Source: Hemiscyllium ocellatum (Eukaryota). Taken from it: a stretch of DNA of 64,000 nt. The position numbers and the translations under genes are program-made. Positions 1,861 through 62,010 of the stretch are shown piece by piece. Every line of letters begins with the position of its first letter. Positions within the stretch are counted from its first letter, which is position 1. The DNA is taken from contig NC_083409.1 in NCBI RefSeq assembly GCF_020745735.1, positions 24,200,048-24,264,047 of the forward strand, given 5' to 3'. The notes beneath the pieces are model-generated. The model saw only the letters and a program-made list of their open reading frames with translations, was not told the DNA's origin and did no database searches.

Positions 1861-2335
1861 TCTTCCTTCTCGGGATTGGCTTGGCGACATTTCTGAGGTT
1901 CAAGGGTTAAGGCATGTCATTGCGATCATCAAAAAGAAGCTCTACTCTGTATCAAACCCCATGCTGACCCTGTTCTGGGGGTGTTTGACTGGGGCAGTGA
2001 TGTCCTGTGATGCCAAATCAAACCTATTGAAAATGCTGAAATCTGTCAGCTGTACAAAACAATGTGAACCTCAGAAGTCTCTGCTTCAGTAAAACAGACC
2101 TACTTCCTGCTCAGCTATCAGTTCCAATTTTAGGTTTTGTCACTGTTTAAAGGGACATGATTCTTAGGTTATTGAGAAAATCTCCACAAGTGTTTTCCTC
2201 AAGCTCCAATGTGGCTGTGAATTTGTGCAGCTTCCTCTGTCTGGGCTGTTCATTGTAGTCTGTTTTCTGTCAATGTCAATCTGGAAAAGGGAATAAAGAT
2301 GAAGAAGATTCAGTCTCTGTCTCGTGTGTGCTTTC
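1855..2335 (+). pseudogene. Orphan copy of the Ig light-chain C 3'UTR with poly(A) signal and no C exon
   Basis: Colinear with 62,100-62,575 and with the reverse complement of 7,260-7,740 (for example cagctgtacaaaacaatgtgaacctcagaagtctctgcttcagtaaa). AATAAA is at 2292-2297. Homology stops at the PLE junction. Confidence 0.9.
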
Positions 2336-7829: not shown

Positions 7830-8158
7830 CTACACAAATTCTGATCTCCTGATGCTCTTGCTGAGGGGAGAGGGGAGGGTCACATGGGTGAGGGCACAGG
7901 AGAAGCGAGCGTTGGACTCCCAGTCAGACCCAGAGAGGGTCAGCAGGCTGCTGACACTGTAGGTGCTGTCCGAAGCTCGCAGGTAGTTGCTGGTCTGAAC
8001 CCCGTCCGAAATGACTGCACCATCCTTCTTCCACTGCACCTCCAGCTCATCGGGATAGAAGTGATTGGCAAGGCACATCAGGGTGGCAGTGCCCTTGGCA
8101 TTGATCTGTTCCGGGAAGGGGGGCAGCAGGGTTAGCTTGGGCTGAGAGTTGTCATGGC
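7830..8158 (-). CDS. IGKC: Ig kappa-type (NS4-like) constant exon C1; ORF open but ends SEFV* (interchain Cys lost) and has PPF for PPS
   Basis: Acceptor tctttcag| followed by (S)HDNSQPKLTLLPPFPEQINAKGTATLMCLANHFYPDELEVQWKKDG...FSCALTHVTLPSPLSKSIRRSEFV*. The C1-set Cys-Trp-Cys pattern is present; length 329 nt. Confidence 0.97.
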
Positions 8159-8284
8159 CTGAAAGACAAGAGAAACAATTTTAATCCCTGCCATTTGAAG
8201 TGATTTCAACTCTCAGAAAATGTTTGAACATTTGTAGCCAATACCTAACAAACCCCAGAAAAGAACAGGCATTGTTTAAGTTGC

Positions 8285-8615
8285 TTCTTGGGATGTGAGT
8301 GTCACTGGCAGGATCAGCATTTATTGCCCATCCCTAATCACCCAGAGGGCAGTTTAGAGTCAACCAAATTGTTGTGGGTCTGGAGTCACATGGTAAGGAT
8401 GGTAGTTTCCTTCCTTAAAGGACATCAGGGAATCAGATGGCTTTTTCCTGACAATCAACAATTGTTTCATGGTCATCATTAGACTCTTAATTGCAGATTT
8501 TTTTATTGAATTCACATTCCACCATCTGCTGCGGCAGGATTCTAACCCTGGCCCCCAGAACATTAATCTGGATCTCTGGATGAACAGCTCAGCAATAGTA
8601 CCATTAAATCATCAC
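8285..8615 (+). mobile_element. Unclassified shark interspersed repeat (SINE-like)
   Basis: cagcatttattgcccatccctaat...gagtcaacc...gtgggtctggagtcacatg; related copies at about 44,200-44,470, 46,300-46,340 and 60,200-60,530. Confidence 0.6.
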
Positions 8616-8739
8616 CTCCTTTATCTTATTTTTAGTTGAGAGTGAAAGCAAGAAGTTTGTTCTGAACAGGGTGATTAGGAAAAGCACAACTGAAAGACTC
8701 CCAGTTCATCCCAAAAAAGATTAGTTCCTTGAAAGTGGA

Positions 8740-9410
8740 GTTGCAGGTAGGTAGGGGGGTGACGAAGTCATTTGGCATGCTTTCCTTTATTGGGCAATGC
8801 ATTGAGTATTGGAGTTGGGAGTTGATGCACCTGTACAGGACATTAGTTTGACCCCTTTTGGAATACTGTGTGGAATTCTGGCCTCCCTGCTGTAGGAAAA
8901 ATGTTGGGAACCTTAAAATGGTTCATAAAAGATTTCCAAGGATGTTGCCAAGTTGGAGGGTTTATGCGATCGGGAGAGGCTGAATAGGCTGAGGCTATTT
9001 TCCCTGGATCGCTGGAGGCTGAGGGATGACCATATCGAGGTTTCTAACATAATGAGGGACATTGATCAAGTGAATAGAGAAGATATTTTGGCTAGAGTGA
9101 AGGAGTCCAGAACTAGAGAGCATAGGTGGAAAGTATCAGGAGAATGATTTAAATGAGAACTAATGCAGAACGTTTTCCTGCCGAGAGTGGTACATTTTTG
9201 GAATGAGCTGCCAGAGGAAGTGGTGGAGGCTGGTATGATAACATTTAAAAGGCATTTGGGTGAGTATATGAATAGGAAGGGTTTTGAAGGATATGGGCCA
9301 AATGATGACAAATGGGACTAGATTAATTTAGTTTATCTGGTCGGCATGGACAAGTTACACAGAAGGATCTATTTCTGTGCTGTACATCTCTCTGACACTA
9401 TGACTCTATG
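8740..9410 (+). mobile_element. CR1-type LINE 3' end
   Basis: LEYCVEFW / ERLNRLRLFSL / VVHFWNELPEEVV motifs and an (atgactct)n-like tail. The paralog is at 58,445-59,120. Confidence 0.85.
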
Positions 9411-9699
9411 TCTCTGTGGTTGGCATGGATGAGTCAGATCGAAGAGTCTGTTTCCATGCTGTACATCTCCATGACTCTCATTGTGTTTCAGTCAAGCCCT
9501 CAGCACCTCAGGCTCTCCCAAAGACGGTTACACTTTGCTTGAAAACCAGTCACTGTTGCAATTTCAGGAAAGGGACAGCCAATTTCTACACAGCAAGATC
9601 CCACTGGAAGCAATGAGATCAAAGAGAATTCTTCATGATTTTGGTTCAAGGATAAATACTGTCCTGAACTCAACCCAAAGAGAAAGGAATTTGGTTCAG

Positions 9700-12600
9700 T
9701 TGGATGAAAAATGAGAAAACAGAAGGTAAAGGAGAAGGTAGGATTGCTGGTTAGTGATGGGATTGATTGTTACCAGAAAATAAAAGGAAGGGATGGAATT
9801 TTTGAATATCAAAGGAACCATGAAAGTGCATGGAAAATCAATAGTAGTACAAACTTAGAGGTTGTATCTAAAAGTGCAGGGAAAATCAATACTAGATCAA
9901 ACTTAAAGACTTTGTGTCTAAATGCATGAAGCATTCTGAGTCAGGGAGACAAAGTGATGCCCCAAATCGAGGTAAATTGAGTTTCCAAAGAATTTAAACT
10001 AGTTAAAGTGGAGGAGGGCTCAGGAGAGGTTAGCAAAGATTCTAGAAGATGTAATAGGACTGAGAGCATGGAAGGGATCAGGAATCAAATGTCAAGCACA
10101 GCAGATAAGAGAACAATGATGAGGAGGAGGGCAGTCAATGCAGGACTGAGGGTGTTGTACTTGAATGCACACAGTGTACACAATGAGCTTGTAGTGCAGA
10201 TTGAAACAAGCAGGTACGATATTCTGGGTATCAGAGAGACATGGCTGTAAGGGGATCCGGGCTAGGAACTAAATATCCAAGGATACATGTCCTATCAAAA
10301 GGACAGGCTGATGGGCAGAGGGACAAGAGTTGCCTTGTTAGTAAGAAATGACTTTAAATCAATAGCAAGAAAGATACAGTCAGAAGGTGTAGAATCTGTG
10401 TGGGGAGAGTTGAAGAACACAAGAAATAAAGAATCTGATGCAAATTATGTTCAGGTCTCCGAGCAGTAATCAGGGTGTGGGGAAGGAAATCAATCAGGAG
10501 ACAGCGAAGCCATAAACAAAATGTCAGGGCAGACTTCAATGGATAAGTGGCCTGGATAGCACGTCTCAAGGAAAGAATTCCATGGAATGGCTATGAGATG
10601 GTTTTTGAAACTGCTTGTAGTTTGGAACAGGCAGTTTTGGATTCAGTGATGTATAATGAGGCAAATTTGATGAGTGAGCTGAAGATGAAAGTGTCCCTCT
10701 GGATAAGTGACCATAATACGATAGAATTCCCCCTGTAGTTTGAGAGGGAGAAGCTGCAATCAGATGGAACAGTATTTCAATTGAGTAAAGGGAACGACAA
10801 AGATGTGAGGAAGGAGCTGGCCAGAGTTGATTGGAAGGGAAGCTGAGCAGGTAAGATGGTGTGGCAGCAAACAGGGTTTCTGGGGGTAATTCAGGAAGCA
10901 GAGCAGGAATTCATCCCAAAAAAGAAGAAACACACTAGGGGGAGGACAATGTAACCATGGCTGATGGGGGAGGTCAAGGACAGCATAAAAGCAAAAGAAA
11001 AAGCACACAATGTGGTGGAAAATAGTGGGAGGCCAGAGGATTAGGAAGTCTTTAAAAACCTGTAGAGGATAACTTAAAAAAAAAATCAGGGTACAGAAGG
11101 TGAAATGTGGGGGAAAGCGAGCCAGTAATATAAAAGAAGATTGCAAGAGTTTCATCAGATATATAAAAAGGAAGAGGGAGGCAGAAATAGACATTGGAAA
11201 AAGAATAATAGGAAGTGAAGAAAAAGCAGAGGAATTGAATACATACATTACATCAGTCTGCACAATGGAAAACATGAGCAGTGTCCCAGTACTTCAAGAC
11301 TGTCAGGGGGCAGAGGTGAGTGCAGTGGCCATCACTAAGGAGGAGGTACTGGGGAAGCTGGAAGGTTTGAATGTGGATAACTCACCCAGACTGGATGAAC
11401 TACACCTGTGTGTTCTGAAGGAGATCACTGAGGAGATTGTGGAGACATTGGTAATGCTCTTTCAGGAATCAATGGAGTCAGGGTGTGGAGGTATTTTCTA
11501 AATAAGGAAGGCCTTTGGAAATCTAAAGCACAAACCACATTCAGGATTTTCTTAAGGTTAACAGGCAGGTGTGGCTTGTGCTTGGGAAGGCAAATGAAAT
11601 ATTAGCATTCATTTCAATAGTGCCAGAATACAAGAGCAGAAATGTACTGCTGAGGCTGTGTAAGGCTCTGATCAGACTGAATTTGGAATATTGTGAACAG
11701 ATTTGTGACCCATATTCTAAGAAACAATGTGCTGGCATTGGAGGGGTTTACAAGAATGATCCTGGGGATGAAGGGCTTGTCATATGAGGCACGGTTAAGG
11801 ACTCTGGGTCTGTACTCAATGGGGTTTAGAAGGATGAGGAGGGATCTTATTGAAATTTGCAGAATACTGATAGGCCTGGATAGAGTGGAAGCAGAGAAGA
11901 TGTTTCCAAAAACAGGAGAGACTCGGTAACCAAGGCACAGCCTCAGAACGAAGGGCCGACCCTTTAGAGCTGAGGTGAGGAGGAATTTCTTCAGCCAGAG
12001 GGTGGTGAATCTGTGGAACTCATTGTTACAGAGGACAGGGAGGCCAAGTCACTGAGTGTATTTAAGACAGAGATAGATAGGTTTGTGATTGTTAAGGGGA
12101 TGGAAATTTCCTGTGGAGTAGGCAGAAGAATGGGGGTGAGAAGCATATCTGCCAAGGTCAAATGGCAGAGCAGATTCAATGGGCTGAATGGCTGATTTTT
12201 GCTCCTATTTCTTAAAGACTTCTGGAGAGTTTCACCAAATCCCTGAAACACTGAACCCACTGAACACTGGACTCTGAGCCCTGCTGTAGTAGCTGTTTGT
12301 CATCAGAACTTTGCAAAGAGATAATCCAAGAGTGGAGAGAGTGTGCATCCATGTGGGAACTTCAGAATGTTTCCCAGCTCCTGGAATACCATGAGTACAG
12401 GAAGTGTGGTCAGTGACAGCAGTTAGAGCTCCGGGTTTCAGAGCTTGAGCAGCAGCTGGTGTCAGTGCAGAGCGTCCGTGAGGCTGAGAGCACGTTTCTA
12501 GATGTGGTCACTCTGCAGCTTCAGAGTATGCAGGGAGAGAGGGAATGGGGGAGCAGCAGACTGTCAAGAGGACCAGGCAGCTAGTACAGGAATCCCCAGG

Positions 12601-13300
12601 CATCCTACTCTCCAACCAGGATTCAGTTCAGAATCCTGATGAGAATGATGGTTCATCTGGGGAGTGCAGCCAGAGCTAAGTCCCTGGCACCACGGGGGGC
12701 TCAGCTGTACAGGGAGGCACAAGGAAGACTGAAAGAGTGATAGTGAGGGGAGATTGGAGAGTGAGGGCAGTCGATAGGTGTTTCTGCAGCTGCAGATGGG
12801 TTTACAAGATGGTGTGTTGTCTCCCTAGTGCCAGGGTTAAGGATATCACTGAGCGGCTGCAGACCACCCTGAGGGGAGAGGGGGAACAGGCAGCGTTCAT
12901 GGTCTACATCAGTCCCAGTGACAGAGGGAGAAAAGGGATGTGGTCAGAAGTTTTGGAGCTTCCTACTTTTAAGTAATGTGGAGCTTCCTACTTTTGAGTT
13001 CCTGCTGCTAATTAGTAGCAGGAACTCAAAAGTAAAAATCTCCAGACTACTCCCAGTGCCCCGTGCAAGTGAAGAAGGGATCAGGCCCGAAACGTCGACT
13101 CTCCTGCTCCTTGGATGCTGCCTGACCTGCTGCACTTTTCCAGCAACACATTTTCAGCACCCCACACAAGTGAGAATAGAATCAGGAGGTGAACACAGGT
13201 GATTGCTGGGTTGGAAAGAGGATCCATGAGGGAGGGCTTTAGATTTTTGTGAGGTGGTTTACTACTGTTAAAGAGGGTTTAAACTAACTTGGCAGGGCTG
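9700..13300 (+). mobile_element. Degenerate CR1 pieces (endonuclease, RT-linker, 3' end and ORF1 esterase fragments) in the J-C intron
   Basis: LRVLYLNAHSV...YDILGIRETW (APE), KSFIRYIKRKR, PRLDELHLCVLKE, and MVCCLPSARVKDITERLQ (ORF1 SGNH). Shared in inverted form with 54,000-58,250. Confidence 0.85.
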
Positions 13301-13589
13301 TGGGAGCCAGGTGCGAATATCAGAGAGGAACACCAAGGACCACAGAATCCTCAGAGCAGTCAATAACTCACCACCCAGTGGGAAGGATGTGGAGAAATAC
13401 AAATGCAAGGAATTTAGAGACCTGCAAATATGATAGAGCCGTTATAAATGGGGGGGGGGGGGTCTTTAATTTCTGAATATAGTGACCAGAGTGGCAAGAG
13501 TGTGTTTTGGTGAATTTTCAGATGGCATTGGTGGCTTAGTGGTGGATCGGGTTGTGGGGGGTGGGGGGGCAGAGGTGGGGGTTCGGGTC

Positions 13590-13885
13590 AGCATAGTGGC
13601 TCAGTGGTTAGCACTGCAGCCTCATAGTACCAGGGTCCCAGGTTCAATTCCAGCCTTGGGTGACTGTGTGGAGTTTGCACATTCTCCCTGTGTCTGCATG
13701 TTTTTCCTCCGTGTGCTCTGGTTTCCTTCCACAGTCCAAAGATGTGCAGGTCAGGTGAATTGGCCATGCTAAATTGTCCATAGTGTTTGATGCATTACTG
13801 AGAGGGAAATGGGTCTGGGTGGGTTACTCTTCGGAGGATCGGTGTGGACTTGTTGGGCTGAAGGGCCTCTTTCCACACTGTGGAG
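13590..13885 (+). mobile_element. HE1-like V-SINE
   Basis: TGGCTCAGTGG A-box, GGTTCAATTCC B-box and V-domain. Confidence 0.85.
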
Positions 13886-13899
13886 AATCTAATCTAATC

Positions 13900-16290
13900 A
13901 TTGGCAGTGAAGAAGGCTGTCTAAGAATACAGTGGAATCTTGACCAACTGGGCCAGTGGACTGAGGAATGGCAGATGGAGTTTAATTCAGATAAATGTGA
14001 GTGCTGTATTTTGGTAAGACACAAGAGATGGGTGAGATCCTGAACAAATATTTTAGGTCAGTATATATTGTGGAGAAAGCTAGGGAATTTGGAAAAATAG
14101 TGATGTCTTGAAAAGAGACCACACAAATGAGGAGATGCTAAAGATCTTAAAACACATAAAGGTAGATAAACCCTAGGACCTGACCAGGTGTATCCCAGAA
14201 CATTGTGACAAACTAGGGAAGAGTTTTTGGGACCCTTGCTGAGATATATGTATCATCGGCAACCATGGGTAAGATGCTGGAGAAACAGAGAGGTTGGCTA
14301 AGATTACGCCATTAATTCAGAAAAGCTGTAAGGAAAAGCAAGGGAACGATAGACCAGTGAGCCTGATGTCAGTGCTGGGTAAGATGTTGGAGTGGATTCT
14401 GTGGGACAGGATTTACATCGTTTGGATAATCAGTGTGGCTTTGTGAATAGGCAATCATGTCTCCTGAATTTGATTCAGGAGGTGACAAAAAGATTGATGA
14501 AGACAGAACAGTAGACATTGTCAATATGGACTTCAGAGTAAAGTGTTTGACAAGGTTCCACACCATAGACTGGTTAGTAAGGTTAGACCACGTGGGATCC
14601 AGGGGGAGCGAGCCATTGGGGTCAAAAAATTGGCTTGAAGATAGGAGACAGAGAGTGGTGGTAAATGGTTGCTTTTCAGACTGGAGATCTGTGAATATCT
14701 GTGTGCCGCAAGGATTGGTGCTCAGTTCACAAATGCTTTTCATCATTTAAAGAAATGATTTGGATGTGAATATAGGAATTACTCTAAGTTTGTAAATGAC
14801 ACCAAAATTGGTGGGACAGTGGATAGTGAAGAAGATTATCTCAGGGTACAGCGGGACCTTGATCAGATGGGGCAATGGGTAGAAGAGTGGCAAATGGAGT
14901 TCAGTTTAGATAAATGTGAGATGTTGCATTTTGGAAAGGCAAACCAGGGCAGGAGTTATACAGTTAATGGGAGGGCCCTGTGGAGTGTTGCTGAATAACA
15001 GACGTAGGGGTGAAGATGCAGGTACATTATTCCTTGAAAGTGGGGTCACAGGTAGACAGGGTGATGAAGAAGGTGTTTGGTTTGCTTGCTTTTGTTCATC
15101 ACTGCATTGAGTCCAGGAGTTGGAACATCATGTTACAGCAGTACAGGAGATTGGTGAGGCCACTTTGGGAATGATGTGAACAATCCTATCATCCTGAGAT
15201 AGGAAGGATGTTGTTAAACTTAAAAAGCTGCAGAAAAGATTTACAAGGATGTGGCCAGGATTTGGAGGGTTTGAGCTGTCGGGAAAAGCTGAAGAAACTG
15301 GGGCTATATTCCCTGCAGCATCTAAGGCCTCGGGGTGACCTTATGGATGTTTATAAAACCATGAGGGGCATGGACAGGGTGTATATCCAAGGTCTTTTCC
15401 GTTGGAAAGGGATTCCAAAACAAGAGGACATAAGTTTAAGGTGAGAGGCAAAAGATTCAAAAGGGACCTGAGGGGTAACTTGTCACACAGAGGGTGGTGC
15501 ATGTCTGGATTGAGTTGCCAGAGAAAGTGTTGGAGGCAGATACAGTTACAGCATTTAAAACACATTGGTATGGGTACAAGAATAGGTTGGGTTTCGAGAG
15601 ATGTAAGCCAAATGCTGGCAAATGGGATGTGGTCATTTTAGGATATTTGGTTAGCATGGACAAGTTGGACTGAAAGGTCTGTTTCCACGCTGTATGACTC
15701 CATGACTATGAGCGGCTGGAAAAGCTGAGACTTCTTACCCTGAAGCGGAAGGTTCTGAGGAGTGACCTTGTAGAGGTTTGGAAAATCATGAGGGATATAG
15801 ATAATGTGAAGAATTCTGGAAGGAGGCGAATGTTTTGTAGCGATGGCAAAAATTGTTCCCAAAGATTATTCCGGGGATGAGGAATATCAGTTATGAAGTT
15901 TGATTGGAGAATTTGGGACTGCCTTCTTTGGAGAAGGTTGAGAGGAGACTTGTTCAAGGAATTCAAAATCAGGAAGGGCCTGGACAGAGTAAATAGGGAG
16001 AAAATGTTCCCAATTTAGAAAGGATTCAGACCAAGAGACCACAGATTGAAAGCAATTGGGAAAAGTAACAAAAGTGAGATGGGGAACAACATTTCTAGCC
16101 AGTGAGTGGTTAAGGTGTGGAATGCACTGCCTGAGAGTGTGGTGGAGGCAGCTTCAATTGAAACATTCTGAAGGGAATGAGGCTGTTATTTGAAAAGAAA
16201 CAATGTGCAGGGTGACAGGGAGAAGGCAGGAGAATGACACTCAGTGAATTGCTCATTCGGAGAGCCGGTCCAGACAGGATGGGTGGAATT
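13900..16290 (+). mobile_element. CR1 RT and 3' fragments (two or more copies)
   Basis: VDIVNMDF, NWLEDRRQRVVVNGCFSDWRSV..VPQG and FTQRVV..WNALPE motifs. The paralog is at 50,560-53,250. Confidence 0.85.
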
Positions 16291-16339
16291 GCGTCCTTGT
16301 GCATTGTAACAATTCTGTGATTGTGAGATTGAGCAGAGT

Positions 16340-16580
16340 TAAAGCTGGGGGAGGTGGGAGCTCGGTGTCTCACTGTGCTGCTGCTGCTGCTGCTGCTGCT
16401 GAGGTCAGTGAGATCAGAGACTGGGACAGGGAGCCAGAGCTCACATCAAACTCTGCCCATGTCTGTCACACTGAGACTGGCAGAAGGCTAGTCATTGATT
16501 TCACTCCATGCTGCAGGAATGGGACCACAGGCTGCAAATGGACAGAGCTCCTCCACACAGTGAGTAAAACTGACTGACTT
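16340..16580 (-). promoter_or_regulatory. Conserved J-proximal intronic block (candidate intronic enhancer) with (CAG)n and lone heptamers
   Basis: About 8 substitutions in about 240 nt versus 50,300-50,535, against about 80% identity in the adjoining J-proximal segment. It contains overlapping CATTTG/ATTTGCAG next to TGTGGT. Confidence 0.5.
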
Positions 16581-16774
16581 CTGTCTTGCTGCTTAAGCGG
16601 GTCAATGGAACTAAAGAAGTACAGCTGGACACCCTGTTCGACACAGTGCTCCTCAATCAACCATTTCATTCACTGCAGCTCCCCACTAACACCTTCAACA
16701 ATTCAGCATTTGTGTTTTAGAAAGTGTATTTCAGTATTGACAGGGTTAATAACGGACAATTGAGGTTTACTTGC

Positions 16775-16809
16775 TCAGTCTGAGCTTGGTTCCTTTCCCG
16801 AACGTGTAC
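16775..16809 (-). CDS. IGKJ: J segment J1 (YTFGKGTKLRL); splice donor is GCAAGT
   Basis: FGxG motif, 35 nt, flanked by a canonical 23-RSS. The phase-1 donor position matches J2 but reads GC. Confidence 0.97.
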
Positions 16810-16848
16810 CACAGTGAGAGCTCCCAGTGCAGAGGCTGTACAAAAACC
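16810..16848 (+). other. 23-bp-spacer RSS of J1 (canonical)
   Basis: CACAGTG at 16810-16816, 23-nt spacer, ACAAAAACC at 16840-16848. Confidence 0.98.
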
Positions 16849-17292
16849 TCTGCTCTCTGCTTCCCCCTGTCACTCTCAACCTCTCCCTGTCTCTCTCTGT
16901 CTCTGTCTATTCTTGGTCAATCTCATTCACTCCCTACCCCTCTCTGTCTCTCCCTCATTCATGTGTCTTTATCTCTCTGTCTCCCTGGGTTGTGTCCAGC
17001 TACTCTCGGGGGTTTGTGAAATTTAGTTTTCATTGTTAAATCTTGCAGCTGTTCTTCACATGCGGCCATGGAGTGTAAGAGGGAAACTTGAGGCCTTCAG
17101 TGAGCGGTGGACACCACAGGGACTGGAGTGTGAAGTGGACAGTGACAATCCCAGCATGAGGTAATTTGTTCAATTTACTTTATATATAACTGTGGATGTG
17201 TCAGTGCAGGAGGTGGGACTGTCTGTCCATTATTATGCATTTCATATAACTGTTGGATGTGTCAGTACAGGAGGTGGTGTTGTGCGTGTTGA

Positions 17293-17320
17293 GGTTTTTA
17301 TATGGCTCTGTATCACTGTA
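17293..17320 (-). other. 12-bp-spacer RSS of V1 (defective)
   Basis: TACAGTG (17320-17314), 12 nt, ATAAAAACC (17301-17293). The first C of the RAG-critical CAC is mutated. Confidence 0.95.
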
Positions 17321-17616
17321 AAGGCTGCTGCTATACTGCTGACAGTAATAGTCAGCGACATCTTCATTCTGAACATTGCTGATTGTCAGGGTGAAACTGG
17401 TCCCTGATACACTGCCGGTGAATCGATCGGAGACTCCTGTGAATCGATTTGTTGCATAATAGATCAGGAGAGAGGGTTTGTGACCTTCTCGCTGCTGGTA
17501 CCAAGCAAGGTTGCTGCTAATGCTTTGACTGGCCGTACAGGTGAGTGTTGCAGTCTGGCCCAGTCCCACTGACAGCACCGGGGGAGACTGGGTCATGATG
17601 ATGTCCCCACTGATAC
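17321..17616 (-). CDS. IGKV: V exon V1 (11-nt leader part 2 plus 95-codon kappa-type V region)
   Basis: ccctcag|GT ATC AGT GGG then [38 protein letters not shown]...[15 protein letters not shown]; conserved Cys/Trp/Cys. Confidence 0.97.
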
Positions 17617-17800
17617 CTGAGGGGTCAGAGAGAAACACAGTGAAGTCAGAACTGTCATAGAAAGAGCCAGTCAAATGAGAGATTGTTTGAGACACTGAGC
17701 ATTCCTCTGGTTTCAGCATTTTCCCTTCAATCACAAGTCAGTGGAATTGGAGTGAAATGGAGAGCAGCGAAAGATTCAAGGTGGAAGGAGAGATTTGTAC

Positions 17801-17849
17801 CTGCAACACAGAATGCCAGGGGCCAGATTAACTGGATGTGTGAAATCAT
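17801..17849 (-). CDS. IGKV: Leader exon L1 (MISHIQLIWPLAFCVA-G)
   Basis: cacaccATG context, 49 nt, phase-1 donor G|GTACAA, 184-nt intron to the V exon. Confidence 0.93.
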
Positions 17850-17904: not shown

Positions 17905-18005
17905 TCTGCTTTATAAAGCTGCAGCCTGTGAGAGTCTGGGTGTTCCTCAGTATGTAAATGGCATCAGGCAGAGAGAGCCACGTCAGCCCCTGACACTTCC
18001 ACTTC
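17905..18005 (-). promoter_or_regulatory. V1 promoter: TATA, octamer variant, CRE/G-box and ETS site
   Basis: GCTTTATAAAGC at 17908-17919, ATTTACAT at 17959-17952, TGACGTGG at 17985-17978, GGAAGTG at 18000-17994. Confidence 0.75.
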
Positions 18006-48899: not shown

Positions 48900-49000
48900 G
48901 AGAGAAGAGGAAGTGTGAGGGGCTGACGTGGCCCAATGACACTTACATACAGAGGAACACCCAGTCAGACTCTCACAGGCTGCAGCTTTATAAAGCAGAG
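48900..49000 (+). promoter_or_regulatory. V2 promoter: PU.1-type ETS site, CRE/G-box, degenerate octamer and TATA
   Basis: AAGAGGAAGTG at 48905-48915, TGACGTGG at 48924-48931, ACTTACAT at 48941-48948, TATAAA at 48989-48994. Confidence 0.75.
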
Positions 49001-49054: not shown

Positions 49055-49103
49055 ATGATTTCACACATCCAGCTGATCTGGCCCCTGGCATTGTGTGTCG
49101 CAG
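49055..49103 (+). CDS. IGKV: Leader exon L2 (MISHIQLIWPLALCVA-G)
   Basis: cacaccATG context, 49 nt, donor G|GTACAA, 186-nt intron. Confidence 0.93.
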
Positions 49104-49289
49104 GTACAAATCTCTCTCCTTCCACCTTGAATCTTTAGCTGCTCTCCATTTCACTCCAATTCCACTGACTTGTGATTGAAGGGAAAATGCTGAAACCAGA
49201 GGAATGCTCAGTGTCTCCAACAATCTCTCATTTGACCGTCTCTTTCTGTGAAAGTTCTGACTTCACTGTGTTTCTCTCTGATCCCTCAG

Positions 49290-49588
49290 GTATTAGTGGG
49301 GACATCAGCATGACCCAGTCTCCCCCGGTGCTGTCAGTGGGACTGGGCCAGACTGCAACACTCACCTGTACGGCCAGTCAATCTGTTAGCAAGTATGTTA
49401 ACTGGTACCAGCAGCGAGAAGGTCAGGAACCCTCTCTCCTGATCTATTATGCAACAACTCGATTCACAGGAGTCTCCGATCGATTCACCGGCAGTGGATC
49501 AGGAACCAGTTTCACCCTGACAATCACCAACGTTCACAATGAGGATGTCGCTGACTATTACTGTCAGCAGTATAGCAGCTACCCTCGA
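49290..49588 (+). CDS. IGKV: V exon V2 (leader part 2 plus 96-codon kappa-type V region), apparently functional
   Basis: ccctcag|GT ATT AGT GGG then [38 protein letters not shown]...[11 protein letters not shown]. Confidence 0.97.
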
Positions 49589-49616
49589 CACAGTGACACA
49601 GAGCCGTACAAAAACC
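49589..49616 (+). other. 12-RSS of V2 (canonical)
   Basis: CACAGTG at 49589-49595, 12 nt, ACAAAAACC at 49608-49616. V-12/J-23 is the kappa configuration. Confidence 0.98.
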
Positions 49617-50034
49617 TCAATACATAAAGCACTACCTCCTGTACTGACACATCCCACAGTTACATAAAATGTATAATAATGGACACAAAGTCCCACCGCC
49701 TGAACTGACACATCCAGTTAGATCTAAATGAAACTGATCAAATTACCTCAAACTGGGATTGGCACTGTCCACGACACACCCCAATCCCTGTGGTGTCTCA
49801 ATGCTCACTGAAGGCCTGTCGTTTCCCTCTAACACTCCATAGCCACATGAGAAAAGCTGCTGCAAGATTTAACATCAAAAAATAAATTTCACAAACCTCC
49901 CAAGCCCAGCTGGAAACAACCCAGAGAGAGAAAGGCACGTGAATGAGGGAGAGACAGAGAGGGGCAGGGAGAGGGTGAGAGTGAGTGAGAGACAGAGAGA
50001 GGTTGACAGTGATAAGAGGGAAGCAGAGAGCTGA

Positions 50035-50073
50035 GGTTTTTGTACAGCCTCTGCACTGGGAACTCTCACTGTG
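50035..50073 (-). other. 23-RSS of J2 (canonical)
   Basis: GGTTTTTGT at 50035-50043, 23 nt, CACTGTG at 50067-50073. Confidence 0.98.
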
Positions 50074-50108
50074 GTACACGTTCGGTAAAGGAACCAAGCT
50101 CAGACTGA
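50074..50108 (+). CDS. IGKJ: J segment J2 (YTFGKGTKLRL), canonical donor
   Basis: FGxG motif; CTG A|GTAAGT phase-1 donor at 50109. Confidence 0.97.
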
Positions 50109-50299
50109 GTAAGTAAACCTCAATCCTCTGTTATTAACCCTGTCAATACTGAAACACACTTTCTAAAATACAGTTGCTGATTTGTTGAAGGTGTTAGTGG
50201 AAAGCTACAGTGAATGAAATGGTTGATTGAGGAGCACTGTGTCTAACTGTGTCCAGCTGTATTTCTTTACATTCATGCCCTCTTTAAAGAAAGTAAGAT

Positions 50300-50535
50300 A
50301 TAAGTCAGTAAGTTTTACTCACCGTGTGGAGGAGCTCTGTCCATTTGCAGCCTGTGGTCCCATTCCTGCAGCATGGAGTGAAATCAGTGAGTAGCCTCCT
50401 GCCAGTCTCAGTGTGACGGACACGGGCAGAGTTTGATGTGAGCTCTGGCTCCCTGTCCCAGTCTCTGATCTCACTGACCTCAGCAGCAGCAGCAGCAGCA
50501 GCACAGTGAGACACCGAGCTCCCACCTCCCCCAGC
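50300..50535 (+). promoter_or_regulatory. Conserved J-proximal intronic block, copy 2
   Basis: ATTTGCAG at 50343, TGTGGT at 50353, (CAG)7 at 50481-50501, CACAGTG at 50502-50508. Confidence 0.5.
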
Positions 50536-50954
50536 TTTAATTCTGTTCAATCACACAATCACAGAACTGTTACAGTGCACAAGAGGCCATTCCGTCCATC
50601 CTGTCTGGACTAGCTCTCCAAATGAGCAATTCACTGAGTGTCATTCTCCTGCCTTCTCCCTGTCACCCTGCATATTGTTCCTTTTCAAATGACAGTCTCA
50701 TTCCCTTCGGAATGTTACAATTAAAGCTGCCTCCACCACACTCTCAGGCAGTGCATTCCACACCTTAACCACCCACTGGCTGAAATGTTGTTCCCCATCT
50801 CACTTTTCTTACTATTCCAATTACTTTCAATCTGTGGCCTCTCGGTCTCAATCCTTTCACAAGTGGAATCATTTTCTCCCTATTTACTCTGTTCCAGGCC
50901 CCCTCCAGATTTTGAATATCGGGAACAATTCTCCTCGCTGCCTTCTCCAAAGAA

Positions 50955-51154
50955 TTGGAGGTGCCGGTGTTGGTCTGGGGTGGACAAAGTTAAAAATCTC
51001 ACAACACCAGGTTATAGTCCAACAGGGGGTTATTTGGAAGCACTAGCTTTCGGAGCGCCCCTCCTTCATCAAATGGTTGTCAGCAGCGCTCCGAAAGCTA
51101 GTGCTTCCACATTAACCTGTTGGACTATAACCTGATGTTGTGTGATCTGTAACT
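50955..51154. mobile_element. Family-B fold-back mini-element with a 12-bp target-site duplication
   Basis: TTCTCCAAAGAA at 50943-50954 and 51155-51166; single copy (empty site) in the left arm at 15924-15935. Confidence 0.9.
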
Positions 51155-51169
51155 TTCTCCAAAGAAGAC

Positions 51170-54100
51170 AGTCCCAAATTCTCCAATCTATCTTCAGAAC
51201 TGATATTCCTCATTCCCTGGAATGATCTTTTTGCATATGTTTGCCAGCTCTACAAAACATTCACCTCCTTCATGAATTATTCACATTATTCATGTCCCTC
51301 ATGATTTTATAAACCTCTATAAGGTCACTCCTCAGCCTCCGGCACTTCAGGGTAAAAGATATCAGCTTTTCCAGCCTCTAATGGTCACGGAGTCATACAG
51401 CATGGAAACGGATCTTTCAGTCTAACTTCTCCATGCTAACTAGATATCCAAAACTGACCTCATCCCATTTGCCAGCATTTAGCCCACATCCCTCTAAACC
51501 CTTCCTATTCATGTACCCATCCAAACATCTTTTAAATGCTATAATGGTATCCGTCTCCAGCACTTTCTCTGACAGCTCGAACCATACATGCACCACCCTC
51601 TGTGTGACAAGTTACCCCTCAGGTCCCTTTTGGATCTTCTGCCTCGCATCTTAAACCTATACCCTCTAGTTTTGGATTCCCTTTCCCAAGGCAAAGACCT
51701 GGGATGTACACCCTGTCCATGCCCGTCATGATTTTATAAGCATCTATAAGGCCACCCCTCAGTCTCCGATCATGCAGGAAAAATAACCCGTCTATTGAAC
51801 CTCTTCCAACAGCTCAAACCCTCCAGTTCCAGGCAACATCCATGTAAATCTTTTCTGCGGAATTTTAAGTTTAACAGCATCCTTCCTATCACAGGATGAT
51901 CAGAATTGTTCACGTTATTCCCAAAGTAGCCTCACCAATTTCCTGTACAGCTGCAAATGATGTCCCAACTCTGATACTTAGTGCAGTGACCAATAAAGGC
52001 AAGTGTACCCAACACCTTCTTCATCTCCCTGTCTCCCTGTGACTCCACTGTCAAGGAATAATGCCCCTGCCCCTGCCCCTGCAGCTGCCCCTGCCCCTGC
52101 ACCCTGAGGTCACTTTGTTGAGCAACACTCCACAGGGCCCCACCATTAACAGTATAAGTCCTGCCCTGGTTTGACTTTCCAAAATGCAACATCTCACATT
52201 TATCTAAATTAAACTCCATTTGCCACACTTTTAGATCAGAGTGGTGCTGGAAAAGCACAGCAGGTCAGGCAACGTCCGAGGAGCAGGAAAATTGACGTTT
52301 CATGCAAAAGCCCTTCATCAGGATTCCTCTAGCTGAAACGTCGATTTTTCTGCTCCTCGGATGCTGCCTGACCTGCTGTGCTTTTCCAGCACCACTCTGA
52401 TCTAAACTCTAGTTTCCAGCATCTACAGTCCGCACTTTTGTCCATTTGCCACACCTCTGCCCATTTCCCCAAATGATCAAGGTCCCACTGTACTCTCAGA
52501 TAAGCTACTTCACTATCCACTGTACCACCAATTTTGTGGTCATTTACAAACTCGCCATAATTCCTATATTCACATCCAAATCATTTATTTAAATGATGAA
52601 AAGCCATGGACACAGCACCAATCCTTGTGGCATACAGCTGACATCTGATCTCCAGTCTGAAAAGCAACCCCTTACCACCACTCTCTGTCTCCTATCTTGA
52701 AGTCATTTTTTTACCCAAATGGCTAGCTCCCCCTGGATCCCATGTGGCCTAACCTTACTAATCAGTCTATCATATGGAACCTTGTCAAATGCTTTGCTGA
52801 AGTCCATATAGATAGTGTCTACTGTTCTGCCTACATCAATCTTCTCTTCAAACAACCTCAATCATGTTAGTGAGACACAATTACCATGCACAAAACTGCA
52901 ATGCTTGTCCAAATGCATCTAAATCCTGTCCCTCAGAATTCACTCCAATAATTTGCCCAGCAATGACATCAGGCTCACTGGTTTATAGTTCCTTGGTTTT
53001 CCTTACAGCCTTTCTTAAATAATGGCTAACATTAGCCAACCTCAGCAAGGGATCCAGCAATCTCCTTCCTAGCTTTCCACAATGTCCTGGGATACACCTG
53101 ATCAGGTCCTGGAGATTTATCTTCTGTCTTGCACTTAAACTCATCTTCTTCTGTAATGTGGACTTGTGTCAAGACATTACTATTTATTTGCCAAGTTCCC
53201 AAATTTCCATGTCTTTCTCCATGATAAATACTGACCTGGAATATTCATTTAAGACCTTAACCATTTCCTGTGGATCCACTCAGAGGTACATTGTTCATCT
53301 TCATGGGGCCCTATTCTCTCTCTAGTTACTCTTTTGCCCTTTTCTTATTTACCATAATTCTACCACTTTTGCCCTTAAGTAAGTTCAGGAATTGTTTGCC
53401 CTCCTTCAAATGTATCTCGAATATACCTGGTCCACATCCTCTACTATTCTTTTCAGGACTTTCCTGCCAACCTTTGATCCCACTTTATTCAGATCCGATA
53501 CATCCATATCCTATAGAAGCTGATATTTCCCCAGTGAAGATGTTTGACCCTGAAAAGGCCTTTGTTCTTTTCTACCATCACCCTCAACTTTGTGATACAA
53601 TGATCACTCTTCTTTAAGTGTCCTCTCATTGACACCTGATCCACTTGGGCCTCCTCATTCCCAAGATCCAGATCTAGCAGAGCCTCCTTTCTCATTAGAC
53701 TGGAAACATGTGGCTGGAGAAAATTCACATGAACACACTCTCACGACTCTGGCCACTCTCTGTCCTTCACACTGCTACTACCCCAGTCTATGTTCAGAAA
53801 TTAAAGACATCCCCCCACCGCCCCATTTATAATGACTATTATATTTGCAGGTCTCTGTAAATTCCTTGCAAATGTAGTCCTCTAAATCCTTCCCACTGGG
53901 TGGTAACTTATTGACTGCACTAATGATTCTGTGGACATTGGTGTTCCTCTCTGACAGTCCCTCCTGGCTCCCACTGCCCTGCCAAGTTAGTTTAAACCCT
54001 CTCCAACAGCACGAGTAGACCACCTCAAAGGAACTCAGTGCCAGCTCTGTTCAGGAGCAACGCTGTCTGGTCTATCCAGGTCCCATCTCACCCAGACCCA

Positions 54101-57100
54101 GTCCCAATGTCACAAGAATCGAAAACCCTCCCTCCTGGAACCTCTTTCCAGCCCCACAGTCACTTGTGTTATCCTCCTGCTTCTCTTCTCACTTGCCTGG
54201 GGCACTGGGAGTAATCTGAAGATTCCTACTTTTGAGTTCCTGATGTTAATTCCCTTCTGAGCTCCCTAAATTCTGACTACAGGACCATATCCCTTTTCTC
54301 CCTCTGTCACTGGGACCGATGTGGACCACGACTGCTGCCTGTTCCCCCTCTCCCCTCAGGGTGCTCTGCAGTCGCTTAGTGACAGCCTTGACCCTGGCAC
54401 CAGGGAGACAACACACCATCCTGGATTCCCATCTGCAGCTGCAGAAACACCTATCGATGCCCTCACTCTCAAATCTCCTTTCACGATCAGTCTTCCTTAA
54501 ACTAACACCCCTCCACCCCCCCACCACAACCACCCCCCACTCCCCCCCCCCAACAATACAGCTGAGCCACCAGTGATGCCATGGACTTGGCTCTGGCTGC
54601 ACTCCCCAGATGAACCATCATTCTCATCAGGATTCCAAACTGAATCCTGGTTGGAGAGTGGGATGCATTCAGGGGATTCCTGTACTAGCTGCCTGGTCCT
54701 TTTGGACTGTCTGCTGCTCCCCCATTCCCTCTCTCCCTGCATACTCTGAAGCTGCAGAGTGACCACATCTAGAAACGTGCTCTCCACGGAGCTCTCAGCC
54801 TCACAGACGTTCCGCACTGACACCAGCTGCTGCTCAAGCTCCAAAATCCGGAGCTTCAACTGCTGTCACTGACCACACTTCCTGTACTCATGGTATTCCA
54901 GGAGCTGGGAAGCATTCTGAAATTCCCACATGGATGCACACTCTCTCCACTCTTTGGTTATCTCTTGGCAAAGTTCTGATGACAAACAGCTCCAGCAGGG
55001 CTCACAGTCCAGTGGGTTCAGTGGTCCAGGGTTTTGGGGAAAATCTCCAGAAGTCTTTAAGAAATAGGAGCAGAAATCAGCCATTCAGCCCATTGAATTT
55101 GCTCTGCCATTTGATCTTGGCAGATATGCTTTTCACCCCCATTCTCCTGCCTACTCCACAGGAACGTTCGATCCCCTTTACAATCACAAACCTATCTATC
55201 TCTGTCTTAAATACACTCAGTGACTTGGCCTCCCTGCCCTCTGTAACAATGAGTTCCACAGATTCACCACCCTCTGGCTGAAGAAAGTCCTCACCTCAGC
55301 TCGAAAGGGTCGACCCTTCATTCTGAGGCTGTGCCTTGGGTACCTAGTCTCTCCTGATTTTGGAAACACCTTCTCTGCATCCACTCTATCCAGGTCTATC
55401 AGTATTCTGTAAATTTCAATAAGATCCCTCCTCATCCTTCTAAACTCCATCGAGTACAGACCCAGAGTCCTCAACCACGCCACATATGACAAGGCTTTCA
55501 TTCCCAGGATCATTCTTGTAAACCCCTCCAATGCCAGCACATTGTTTCTTAGAATATGGGTCCCAAATCTGCTCGCAATATTCCAAATGCAGTCTGACCA
55601 GAGCCTTACACAGCCTCAGCAGTACATCTCTGCTCTTGTATTCTGGCCCTATTGAAATGAATGCTATTATTTCATTTACCTTCCCAAGCACAAACTGGAC
55701 CTGCCTGTTATCCTGAAGAGAAACCTGAATGAGGTTTGTGCTTCAGATTTCCAAAGGCTTTCCTTCTTTAGAAAACAGTCTTTGCATCTCTTCTTCCTCC
55801 CAAAGTGCACACCCTCACACTGTAACACATTGTATTCTATCTGCCACTTCTTTGCCCACTCTCCGAGCCTATCCAGGAGCTTTTACAGTCTTCCCACTTC
55901 CTCAACACTACCTGTCCCTCCACCCACCTCATGTCACCTGCAAACTTAGCAACAATGTCTTCACTTCCTTCATCCAGATTGTTAATGTATAACGTGAATC
56001 GTTTTGGTCCTAACATTGACACCTGCAGAACTCTACTCGTCACCAGCAGCCATTGTTCCTCATGCTCTGCTTTATGCCAACCTGTCAGTCCTCGGTCCAT
56101 GCCAGTACATTGCCCCTAACACTATGGGCGCTTATCTTATGTCAAATGCCTTCTGGAAATCCAAATAGATTACTTCCTCGGACTCTCCTTTGTCTGACTG
56201 GCTCATTGCCTCCTCAAAGAATTCTAACAGTTTTGCCAGGCATGACATCTCCTTGATGAAGCCATTGCACTTCCAAGTCCTCTGCAATTTCATCCTTAAA
56301 TTGAAGTCTAAAACCTTACCAACAACTGAGTACTGGCTAACAGGCCTATAATGTCCCATCTTCTACCTCCCTCCCTTCTTAAACAGGGGTGGTATGTGAG
56401 CCATTTTCCTGTCCCTTGCCCCCACCAAATCCATCCCCACCCCTCCTCCACACCCTGACTCCATTGATTCCTGAAAGATCATCACCAATGTCTCTACAAT
56501 CTCCTCAACAATCTCCTTCATAACACACGGGTGTAGTTCGTCCAGTCTGGGTGCGTTATCCACATTCAGACCTTTTAGCTTCCCCAGTACCTCCTCCTTA
56601 GTGATGTCCACTACACTTCCCTCCGACCCCTGATAGTCTTGAATTACTGGTACACTGCTGGTGTTTTCCATGGTGCAGACTGATGCAAAGTATCTATTCA
56701 ATTCCTCTGCTATTCCTTCATTTCCTGTTATTCTTTCTCCAGCCTCATTTTCCAGTGATCCATAGTCTATTTTTGACTCCTTCTTCCGTTTTATACACCT
56801 GATAAAACTCCTGAAATCTTCTGTTATATTACTGGCTAGATAGCTTCCACATTTCACATTCTCCACCCTTACTGCTTTTTCCGTTATCCTCTGCAGGTTT
56901 TTAAAGGCTTCCTAATCCTCTGGCTTCCCACTACTCTCCACCACATTGTGTACTTTTTCTTTTGCTTTTATGCTGTCCTTGACCTCCCCCATCAGCCATT
57001 GTTGACTTGTCCTCCCCTTAGTATGTTTCTTCTTTTTTAGGATGAATTCCTGCTGTGCTTCCTGAATTACCCCCAGAAACCCTGCTGTTTGCTGTCCCAC

Positions 57101-59120
57101 CATCTTACCTGCTCGGCTCCCCTTCCAACCAATTCTGGCCAGCTCCTTCCTCATGTCTTTGGAGTTCCCTTTACTCAACTGAAATACTGTTCAATCTGAT
57201 TGCAGCTTCTCTCTCAAACTACAGGGGGAATTCTATCGTATTATTGTCATGTATCCATTGGGATACTTTCACCTTAAACTCACTAATCAAGTTTTCCTCA
57301 TTACACATCACTGAATCCAGACCTGCCTGTTCCATAATGGCTCAACCACAAGCTGCTCCAAAATCCATCTCGTCGACATTCCGCGAAATCCTTTCCTTGA
57401 GCCGCGCTACCCAGTCCACCTATCCATTGAGGTCTGCCCTGATACTTTGTGTATGACTTTTCTGTCTCCTGATTGATTTCCTTCCCCACACCCTGGTTAC
57501 TGCTTGGAGACCTGGACATAACTTGCATCAGATTCTTTATTTATTGCAGTTCCTCAGCTCTACCCACACACATTCTACACCTTCTGACTCTCCATCACTT
57601 CTTGCCATAGATTTAATTTCATTTCTCACTAACAAGGCAACACTTGTCCCTCTGCCCATCTGCCTGTCCTTTTGATGGGACATGTATCCTTGGATTTTTA
57701 GTTCCCAGCCTGGATCCCCTGACAGCCATGTCTCTGTGATACCCATAACACCATACCTGCCAGTTTCAATCTGCACTACAATCTCATTGTGTACACTATG
57801 TGCATTTAAGTACAACACCCTCAGTCCTGCATTGACTGCCCTCCTTCCCATCATTGTCCCCTTACCTGCTGTGCTTTACGTTCGATTCCTGATCCTTTCT
57901 GTACTCACTGTCCTTTTACATCTTCTAGAAACTTGAATAACCTTTCCTGAGCCCTCCTCCACTTTAACTAGTTTAAATTCCTTAGAAACTCAATTTATCT
58001 CAATGTGTGGCATCACTTTTACTCCCTTACTCGGAATGCTTTGTGCATTGAGATACAACCTCTTTAAGTTTGTACTATTATTGATTTTCCATGCACTTCC
58101 ATGGTTCCTTTGATGTTCAAAACTTCCATCCCTTTCTTTTATTTTCTGGTCACAATCAATCCCATCACTAACCACCATTCCACCTTCTCCTTTACCTTCC
58201 ATTTTCTCATTTTCCATCCAACTGAACCAAATTACTTTCTCTTTGGGTTGAGTTCAGGCCAATATTTATCGTTGAGCCAACATCATTATTACTCTTTGAT
58301 CTCATTGCTTCTAGTGGGATCTTGCTGTGCAGAAACTGGCTGCCATGTTACTGACATTGCAACAGTGACTGCTTGTCAAACAAAACTGTCTGTAAATGCC
58401 TTTGGGAGAGCCTGAAGTGTTAAGGGCTGGATTGAAATACAATTAGAGTCAGAGAAATGGACAGCACAGAAACAGACCCTTCGGTCCAACTCGTCCATGC
58501 TGACCAGATATCCAAAATTAATCTAGTCCCATTGGCAGCATTTGGCCCATATCCCTCTAACATCTTCCAATTTACATATCCATGCATTTTAAATGGTGTA
58601 ATTGTACCAGCATTCACCACCTCCTCTGGCAGCTCATTCCATACATTTAACACCCTCTGAATGAAAATGTTGTCCCTCAGGTCCCTTTTAAATCTTTCCC
58701 CTGTCACCTTCAGCCTATGCCCTCCAGTTCTGGACTCCCCCACTCTGGAGTAAAGATCTTCTCTAGTCACCCTATCTATGCTGCTCATGATTTTATAAAC
58801 CTCTATACGGTCACCCATCAACCTGCAATGATCCAGGGAAAACAGCCCCAGCCTATTCAGCTTCTCCCTTTCACACAAACCCTCCAACCTTGGCAACATC
58901 CTTGTAAATTTTTTCTGGATCATTTTAAAGTTCACAACATTTTTCCTCCAGCAAGGAGAACTGAATTACACACAGTATTCCAAAAGTGCCCTAACCAATG
59001 TCCTGTACAGCCGCAACAGCTCCCAACTCCAATACCCAATGCACTGCCTAATAAAGGAAAGCAAACCAAATGACTTTGTCACTCCCCTACCTTCCTGCAA
59101 CTTCATCTTCAAGGAACTAT
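51170..59120 (-). mobile_element. CR1 fragments of the cluster-2 J-C intron (paralogous to 8,740-15,900), with a family-A fold-back at about 52,232-52,440
   Basis: Inverted copies of the same APE/RT/ORF1 peptides, for example LRVLYLNAHSVHNE and MVCCLPGARVK. Confidence 0.85.
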
Positions 59121-61681: not shown

Positions 61682-62010
61682 CCCGTGAGAACTCTCAGCC
61701 CAAGCTGACCCTGCTGCCTCCCTCCCCGGAGCAGATCAATGCCAAGGGCACTGCCACCCTGGTGTGCCTTGCCAATCACTTCTATCCCGATGAGCTGGAG
61801 GTGCAGTGGAAGAAGGACGGTGCAGTCATTTCAGACGGGGTTCAGACCAGCAACTACCTGCGAGCTTCGGACAGCACCTACAGTGTCAGCAGCCTGCTGA
61901 CCCTCTCTGGGTCTGACTGGGAGTCCAACGCTCACTTCTCCTGTGCCCTCACCCATGTGACCCTCCCCTCTCCCCTCAGCAAGAGCATCAGTAAATCAGA
62001 ATGTGTGTAG
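61682..62010 (+). CDS. IGKC: Ig kappa-type (NS4-like) constant exon C2, apparently functional
   Basis: tctttcag| then (T)RENSQPKLTLLPPSPEQINAKGTATLVCLANHFYPDELEVQW...FSCALTHVTLPSPLSKSISKSECV*. Retains the penultimate Cys; in frame with J2. Confidence 0.97.

Follow-up and report, generated by a model that had tools for sequence, protein, structure and literature searches.

A stretch of 64,000 nucleotides from the epaulette shark Hemiscyllium ocellatum (NC_083409.1, positions 24,200,048 to 24,264,047; the whole of it is called the window here) contains two immunoglobulin light-chain miniloci, placed head to head and inverted relative to each other, one of which is a duplicate that has very probably been silenced or strongly weakened, with its defects in the signals and not in the reading frame. 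This unit, cluster 1, is a kappa-type minilocus of leader (L), variable (V), joining (J) and constant (C) exons on the minus strand (7830-17849; ATG at 17849, stop at 7832-7830). Its inverted sister, cluster 2, lies on the plus strand (ATG at 49055, stop at 62008-62010) and served as the comparator. An earlier sequence-only reading of cluster 1 had proposed that a duplicate was silenced by lesions concentrated on recombination, splicing and assembly signals while its coding sequence was maintained. Our analysis upholds the silencing or strong weakening, on the grounds of defects in the V recombination signal, the J donor and the terminal cysteine of a unit whose frames are open. The further idea, a concentration of lesions on signals beyond neutral decay with the coding sequence kept by selection, is unsupported. 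We consider it likely that cluster 1 is a recently disabled, or nearly disabled, member of a large family of kappa-type clusters.

An old duplication, head to head, of a shark kappa-type (type III / NS4-like) minilocus gave rise to cluster 1 as one of its two arms. Its exons match the Pfam V-set (E=3.6e-18) and C1-set (E=8.1e-22) domains, and its V and C are 87-93% and 92-96% identical, respectively, to Hemiscyllium and Chiloscyllium proteins annotated as 'immunoglobulin kappa light chain-like'. The nearest proteins are kappa light chain-like models of Hemiscyllium ocellatum and Chiloscyllium punctatum and a nurse-shark NS4-type chain. Each of the two clusters consists of a leader exon, a V exon and, behind it, a recombination signal sequence (RSS) with a 12-bp spacer, about 0.4 kb further on a J whose signal has a 23-bp spacer, and one C exon beyond a long, repeat-rich J-C intron (8.6 kb in cluster 1, 11.6 kb in cluster 2). 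The order in cluster 1 is V, 471 bp, J, 8.6 kb, C, all on the minus strand, with spacers of 12 and 23 bp; its domains, its spacers, its single V, J and C and their one orientation are those of the cartilaginous-fish kappa type. Collinearity between the two arms extends over some 15-17 kb, and they have old repeats in common. The relatives used here came from protein searches, which supplied genome models and two stray complementary DNAs (cDNAs) only. A search with the C exon alone gave three short matches, two of them shark cDNAs under bacterial names, and one such cDNA (P0001), taken as the query, led to full-length shark kappa chains.

Translation in phase bore out that L, V, J and C of cluster 1 have zero stops and zero frameshifts, with the phase kept across both introns. 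The five changes singled out at the outset are likewise present. The V heptamer reads TACAGTG in cluster 1 and CACAGTG in cluster 2 (C to T at base 1, 17320), the V nonamer ATAAAAACC against ACAAAAACC (C to T at base 2, 17300), and the J donor GC against GT. The third-to-last codon of C (7838-7836) is TTT (Phe) in cluster 1 and TGT (Cys) in cluster 2, the changed base being 7837, and in framework region 3 (FR3) codon 17410-17408 is GTA (Val, GSVSG) against GGA (Gly, GSGSG), a Gly-to-Val change at 17409. At all five sites the state of cluster 2 is also that of the outgroups, namely a Chiloscyllium punctatum cluster (L004), two cDNAs (L001 and L002) and 18-21 shark kappa proteins, the outgroup heptamers having CAC; all five changes were thus derived on cluster 1's own branch. 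Four further derived changes had been overlooked: a 3-bp deletion abutting the heptamer, a Ser-to-Phe replacement (8116) within the invariant PPS motif, a Val-to-Met replacement (8078) before the first cysteine of the C domain, and a Gln-to-His replacement (17480) in FR2. Among shark kappa chains the terminal Cys is conserved in 21 of 21, the PPS Ser in 18 of 18 and the Val in 17 of 18. A scan of the vicinity of the cluster 1 V found no substitute RSS.

Invariant positions were struck by the C-to-T change in the heptamer, by Cys-to-Phe and by Ser-to-Phe. In the whole signal, it is only at the CAC of the heptamer that mutation dramatically lowers the efficiency of recombination (PMC2193808), and a 2025 study describes CAC as 'strictly conserved' (PMC12711392). 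At position 2 of the nonamer, according to the same study, an A on the bottom strand correlates with low functionality, C or T there being tolerated (PMC12711392); a bottom-strand A is a top-strand T, as in cluster 1. The terminal Cys of C is the residue that links the light to the heavy chain, and cluster 1 has Phe in its place. Two of the five lesions, the FR3 change and the GC donor, are weak. The change from GSGSG to GSVSG is present and derived, but we rejected it as a real lesion, since other shark kappa V regions show Q, R, K or a QVSS variant there. As for the donor, GC makes up less than 1% of vertebrate donors and is functional if the remaining site is near the consensus, and changes from GT to GC have often been fixed, and often tolerated, in working vertebrate genes (PMC2490688). 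The exonic side of the cluster 1 J donor, as read from the sequence, mismatches the consensus (TGA/GC, the stroke marking the exon border) and has no compensating exonic AG, which suggests that this donor is weak; use of the following GT, which lies 4 nt downstream, would throw the reading frame onto a TGA stop.

The proposed concentration of lesions on signals was examined by counting lineage-specific changes, that is, positions at which one sequence differs and the other two agree, a count that does not depend on a tree. Cluster 1, cluster 2 and L004 were compared, the last being a frank pseudogene that carries frameshifts and a 22-bp deletion in V and served as the yardstick. Of 40 core signal positions (heptamers, nonamers and splice dinucleotides), 3 were changed in cluster 1, 0 in cluster 2 and, again, 3 in L004. 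The non-coding rate of change (2,483 sites) was 3.06% for cluster 1, 5.44% for cluster 2 and 4.95% for L004, and the coding rate (687 sites) was 2.77%, 2.62% and 5.09%, which gives ratios of coding to non-coding change of 0.90, 0.48 and 1.03, respectively. The excess of signal changes in cluster 1, 3 of 40 sites, is not significant either against non-coding (Fisher test, p = 0.13) or against coding positions (p = 0.115). In this test of signal against coding rate, set beforehand, the density of lesions was thus no higher than neutral decay would give, the very outcome that the sequence-only reading had named as contradicting it. The maintenance of the coding sequence does not hold up either, the ratio of 0.90 standing beside 1.03 in the frank pseudogene.

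Open frames have little to say on this question. We rejected the absence of stops as a sign of selection, since few frame-breaking events are expected: 3.8% of random substitutions in the cluster 1 exons would create a stop, so that the 19 coding substitutions on its branch lead to an expectation of about 0.7 stops and about 1 frameshift, and the chance of intact frames is 0.12-0.65, set by the length of drift. With a short branch and few expected breaks, open frames are unremarkable. Compared pairwise, the two arms diverge by 14% in non-coding sequence (11,146 aligned sites) and by 4-5% in the coding sequence of framework, J and C, with a ratio of nonsynonymous to synonymous rates (dN/dS) of 0.38.

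Several observations weigh against a plain loss of function. The octamer-like and TATA-like elements, the L donor, the V and C acceptors, the whole J 23-RSS, FGKG and AATAAA are all intact in cluster 1. Synonymous and nonsynonymous changes number 9:10 on its branch (5:12 for cluster 2 and 12:23 for L004), equivalent to an omega of about 0.4, below that of cluster 2 (one-sided p = 0.034, uncorrected), which suggests that some purifying selection acted on part of the cluster 1 branch. Derived protein changes in framework and C are as many in cluster 2 as in cluster 1, and the low ratio of 0.48 in cluster 2 may be partly an artefact of mosaic history. The 9:10 count is also what would be expected if the gene had worked for part of the branch and then died, and its p value would lose significance once corrected for a family that numbers tens to hundreds of clusters; the nurse-shark NS4 family has about 50 genes (PMC2193156).

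Some of this evidence would fit a working gene of low efficiency, in which RAG cleaves rarely at TACAGTG, the GC donor is spliced and the chain pairs non-covalently with the heavy chain. The open frames, the intact promoter, ATG, acceptors, J RSS and poly(A) signal, the omega of about 0.4, the repeated fixation of GT-to-GC changes in working vertebrate genes (PMC2490688) and the place of GSVSG within natural variation all agree with it. We nevertheless consider such a gene unlikely, as CAC is treated as strictly required (PMC2193808, PMC12711392), nonamer position 2 has the least favourable base, the GC donor lacks a compensating exonic AG, the terminal Cys is invariant in all 21 relatives, and the joint tolerance of four independent weakening changes in one unit is improbable.

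The history of the two arms is mosaic. The leader intron differs between them by 3.8%, the promoter by 4.9% and block 16569-16300 of the J-C intron by 4.1%, the values for the V signal, the V-J spacer and the first part of the J-C intron being 14-15%; the 3' untranslated region (3'UTR), the promoter and the leader intron are far closer between the arms than the background. A maximum chi-square break falls at 17326, the end of V (permutation p < 0.001). In the V-J spacer cluster 1 differs by 10.6% from the Chiloscyllium cluster and by 14.9% from cluster 2, whereas in the C exon and 3'UTR it is nearer to cluster 2 than to the Chiloscyllium cluster, and an Ile is common to the C exons of clusters 1 and 2 and absent from 18 other chains. 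This uneven divergence, with a nearest relative that varies by region, indicates that the clusters exchanged sequence in the germline. L004 was dropped as a plain outgroup because the V-J spacer gave 15 against 40 'derived' changes, an imbalance which means that in this spacer cluster 1 has a closer relative in L004 than in cluster 2. Some of the duplication, at least, is about as old as the split of the two genera.

The heptamer change is found at a second locus. A RefSeq model from a different epaulette-shark cluster (P0021) reads through its V signal identically to cluster 1, with Y for TAC and a shortened complementarity-determining region 3, and it keeps the Gln of FR2, the Gly of FR3, PPS and SECV; in Chiloscyllium V models that read through the signal, the residue is H (= CAC) in 8 of 8. 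The V-end/TAC block common to cluster 1 and P0021 implies that the heptamer lesion was inherited or converted and is not private, and, as P0021 keeps the state of cluster 2 at those four sites, that this lesion is older than the private ones. It is conceivable, although in our view very unlikely, that the TACAGTG V-end block is the mark of a kappa sub-lineage, with cluster 1 and P0021 as carriers, spread on the chromosome by duplication or conversion with open frames. If so, non-rearranging V units would be kept for some use, such as that of a transcribed decoy or of a template in germline exchange; or else shark RAG would tolerate TAC.

Under recent disablement, the explanation that we favour, RAG would be unable to cleave efficiently at V1, and V1-J1 joining would fail. 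There would then be no selectable product, and the remaining unit would drift. The lesion at the V end and heptamer would have come first and the other, private changes later; a signal lost first and the rest afterwards is the classic path of pseudogene formation. The frames would still be open only owing to the short branch. The decay is probably slowed, and in part patched up, by sequence that family members exchange in the germline, to judge from the mosaic history and from the low divergence of the promoter, leader intron and 3'UTR between the arms.

The alternative is that the duplicate was silenced at its signals while selection kept its coding sequence; the copy might then donate sequence by gene conversion to working clusters, or lend its J-C unit as a spare to some other V, such as V2 joined by inversion. 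This alternative can draw on the 9:10 count with its uncorrected p of 0.034, on a rate of signal change of 7.5% against 2.8-3.1% elsewhere, and on a joint test of three signal changes with no frame break (p = 0.02-0.05, uncorrected). The perfectly kept J1 RSS, the recurrence of the TAC block in P0021 and the clear exchange among clusters (leader intron and promoter against the 14% background, the break at 17326, the region-dependent nearest relative) can be read in the same sense. Yet no test survives correction for the picking of one cluster from tens to hundreds, the coding rate of cluster 1 equals its non-coding rate overall, and invariant residues (Cys, Ser, Gln) have been replaced, unlike in a maintained template. 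The spare J-C unit would itself have a GC donor and no Cys, and exchange between clusters is silent on the direction of transfer or its benefit. Somatic gene conversion is not known as a route of diversification in sharks. Taken with these points, selective silencing is distinctly unlikely. That the lesions are assembly errors or are confined to a single allele, one assembly having been read, is highly improbable, because five separate substitutions and a clean 3-bp deletion are not homopolymer slips and the same V-end/TAC block is translated in P0021, an independent model at another locus.

As a disabled unit with open frames, cluster 1 is a textbook member of the class that IMGT calls 'ORF' (open reading frame), defined by an open frame in a gene whose conserved residues and/or signals (for splicing, recombination or regulation) have been altered (PMC2880031). 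Both parts of the definition are seen here, open L, V, J and C on the one hand and TACAGTG, ATAAAAACC, the GC donor, Cys-to-Phe and Ser-to-Phe on the other. The defects in splice and recombination signals set cluster 1 apart from the IMGT class 'functional', and the lack of any stop or frameshift in L, V, J and C sets it apart from 'pseudogene' (P). Among the examples of the 'ORF' class are human heavy-chain V (VH) segments with open frames that were never found in cDNA (PMC2212390). Cluster 1 resembles such examples in its open coding region and in its defects of recombination signal, splicing and conserved residues; they are single V segments in a translocon locus, whereas here a whole minilocus is affected, at the V RSS, the J donor and the C-terminal Cys.

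In sharks, the nurse-shark NS4 pseudogene S5 (Lee et al. 2000) has non-canonical RSS heptamers and a GT-AT splice pair at the leader intron (PMC2193156). NS4 genes share with cluster 1 the light-chain type and the layout of one V, one J and one C; S5 has a stop codon and cluster 1 has none yet, which places cluster 1 at an earlier stage, in another species. The signal-defect class is thus already known, both as the IMGT 'ORF' category and, since 2000, from NS4 S5. L004 (chiPu_0016820, P0022) is 88-94% identical to cluster 1 and also has 3 of the 40 core signals changed on its own branch, but it has gone further, with frameshifts, the 22-bp V deletion and the loss of several conserved C residues, and represents a later stage of the same decay. 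Like the pseudo-V donors of the chicken, cluster 1 has a V that is probably unable to rearrange yet readable. The chicken donors have no leader, promoter or RSS and lie upstream of a single working V, and somatic conversion is documented in that species; cluster 1, by contrast, has a promoter, a leader, the remnant of an RSS and its own J and C. The coordinates of both clusters are collected in Table 1.

Table 1. Features of the two light-chain clusters, in window coordinates.
Feature	Position	Strand	State
Octamer-like promoter element ATTTACAT	17952..17959	-	intact in cluster 1; cluster 2 has ACTTACAT
TATA-like box TTTATAAAG	17909-17917	-	intact in cluster 1
Cluster 1 leader exon, ATG at 17849	17801..17849	-	open; GT donor 17800-17799
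Cluster 1 V exon	17321..17616	-	open V-set; AG acceptor 17618-17617; 3-bp deletion at 3' end
Cluster 1 V 12-RSS: TACAGTG, 12-bp spacer, ATAAAAACC	17293..17320	-	heptamer 17320-17314, nonamer 17301-17293
Cluster 1 J 23-RSS: GGTTTTTGT, 23-bp spacer, CACTGTG	16810..16848	-	fully canonical; 1/39 differs from cluster 2
Cluster 1 J coding, YTFGKGTKLRL	16775..16809	-	open, FGKG intact
Cluster 1 J donor GC	16773..16774	-	T-to-C at 16773; context GA/GCAAGT
Cluster 1 J-C intron, 8.6 kb	8159..16772	-	decayed repeats; largely collinear with cluster 2 intron; AG acceptor 8160-8159 intact
Cluster 1 C exon, end ...RRSEFV	7830..8158	-	open C1-set; stop TAG 7832-7830
AATAAA poly(A) signal	7302-7297	-	kept in both clusters
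Cluster 2, whole	49055..62010	+	leader 49055-49103; V 49290-49588
Cluster 2 V 12-RSS	49589-49616	+	canonical: CACAGTG-12-ACAAAAACC
Cluster 2 J	RSS 50035-50073; J 50074-50108; GT donor 50109-50110	+	
Cluster 2 C exon	61682-62010	+	end ...SKSECV

Cluster 2, though 'intact', is an imperfect reference. In its promoter region (window 48925-48965, plus strand) the octamer is the weaker ACTTACAT, where cluster 1 has ATTTACAT, and 9 bp are deleted directly upstream; its V has replacements at otherwise invariant residues, Lys to Glu in FR2 and Ser to Thr and Gln to His in FR3. Not far into the J-C intron (16300-16569 on the minus strand, 50313-50580 on the plus strand), the arms share a block of about 270 bp at 96% identity, and its identity to Chiloscyllium is 95-96%, in an intron that diverges by 14-15% around it; the block, with a (CAG)n run at its end, is a candidate for a regulatory element within the intron. 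Elsewhere in the J-C intron of cluster 1, an open stretch at window 14759-14995 on the plus strand, and thus antisense to the immunoglobulin gene, weakly matches a reverse transcriptase (RVT_1, E=0.011, short of the cut-off); it belongs to a set of decayed retroelement fragments present in both arms. Pfam found nothing else on the open stretches of the J-C intron, and ARAGORN found no tRNA-like gene.

A third copy of a light-chain 3'UTR lies at window 1853-2334 (plus strand) and is 80-84% identical to those of clusters 1 and 2 and of L002. BLAST found no C exon upstream of it, and the copy is probably the remnant of a further cluster, arranged tail to tail with cluster 1. In Chiloscyllium punctatum, a further cluster (L003:5887-6640, BEZZ01000502.1) shows V and J joined directly in the genome (...YYCMQDYSVPQTLSFGKGTKLQL, followed by a GT donor), without an intervening RSS; this germline-joined VJ gene carries no annotation beyond 'hypothetical protein' (P0020). 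Germline-joined VJ genes are known from nurse-shark NS4. Cluster 1 is not of this kind, its V and J being 471 bp apart with both recombination signals present. The outgroup sequences L001 (GCA_012029535.1, 'Aeromonas veronii') and L002 (GCA_018272985.1, 'Salmonella enterica') are short contigs with rearranged, spliced shark-type kappa chains (V-J-C with 3'UTR), 75-82% identical to the C of the window; they are vertebrate cDNA contaminants under bacterial names.

The sequence-only reading had also supposed that annotation based on open frames would miss a copy such as cluster 1. This is correct for generic gene predictors and not for IMGT, whose 'ORF' class covers these defects (PMC2880031). 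Generic predictors label such units 'kappa light chain-like' proteins, so that annotation-based counts of the light-chain genes at work in sharks will be too high. Automatic shark kappa models also often translate through the V or J RSS (as in HSDTEPYKN and AEVFVQPLHW; P0012-P0014, P0016, P0017, P0019, P0021 and P0054-P0060), so that the public shark 'kappa light chain-like' proteins are partly artefacts. The three-way comparison of rates, with a frank pseudogene as the yardstick, offers a simple means of separating a sequence that is maintained from one that is merely young. Large antibody gene families always hold copies at every stage of decay, and cluster 1, of little weight in itself, is a clean example of the first stage. 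Its mosaic arms and the TAC block that it shares with another locus add to the evidence for germline exchange among shark immunoglobulin clusters.

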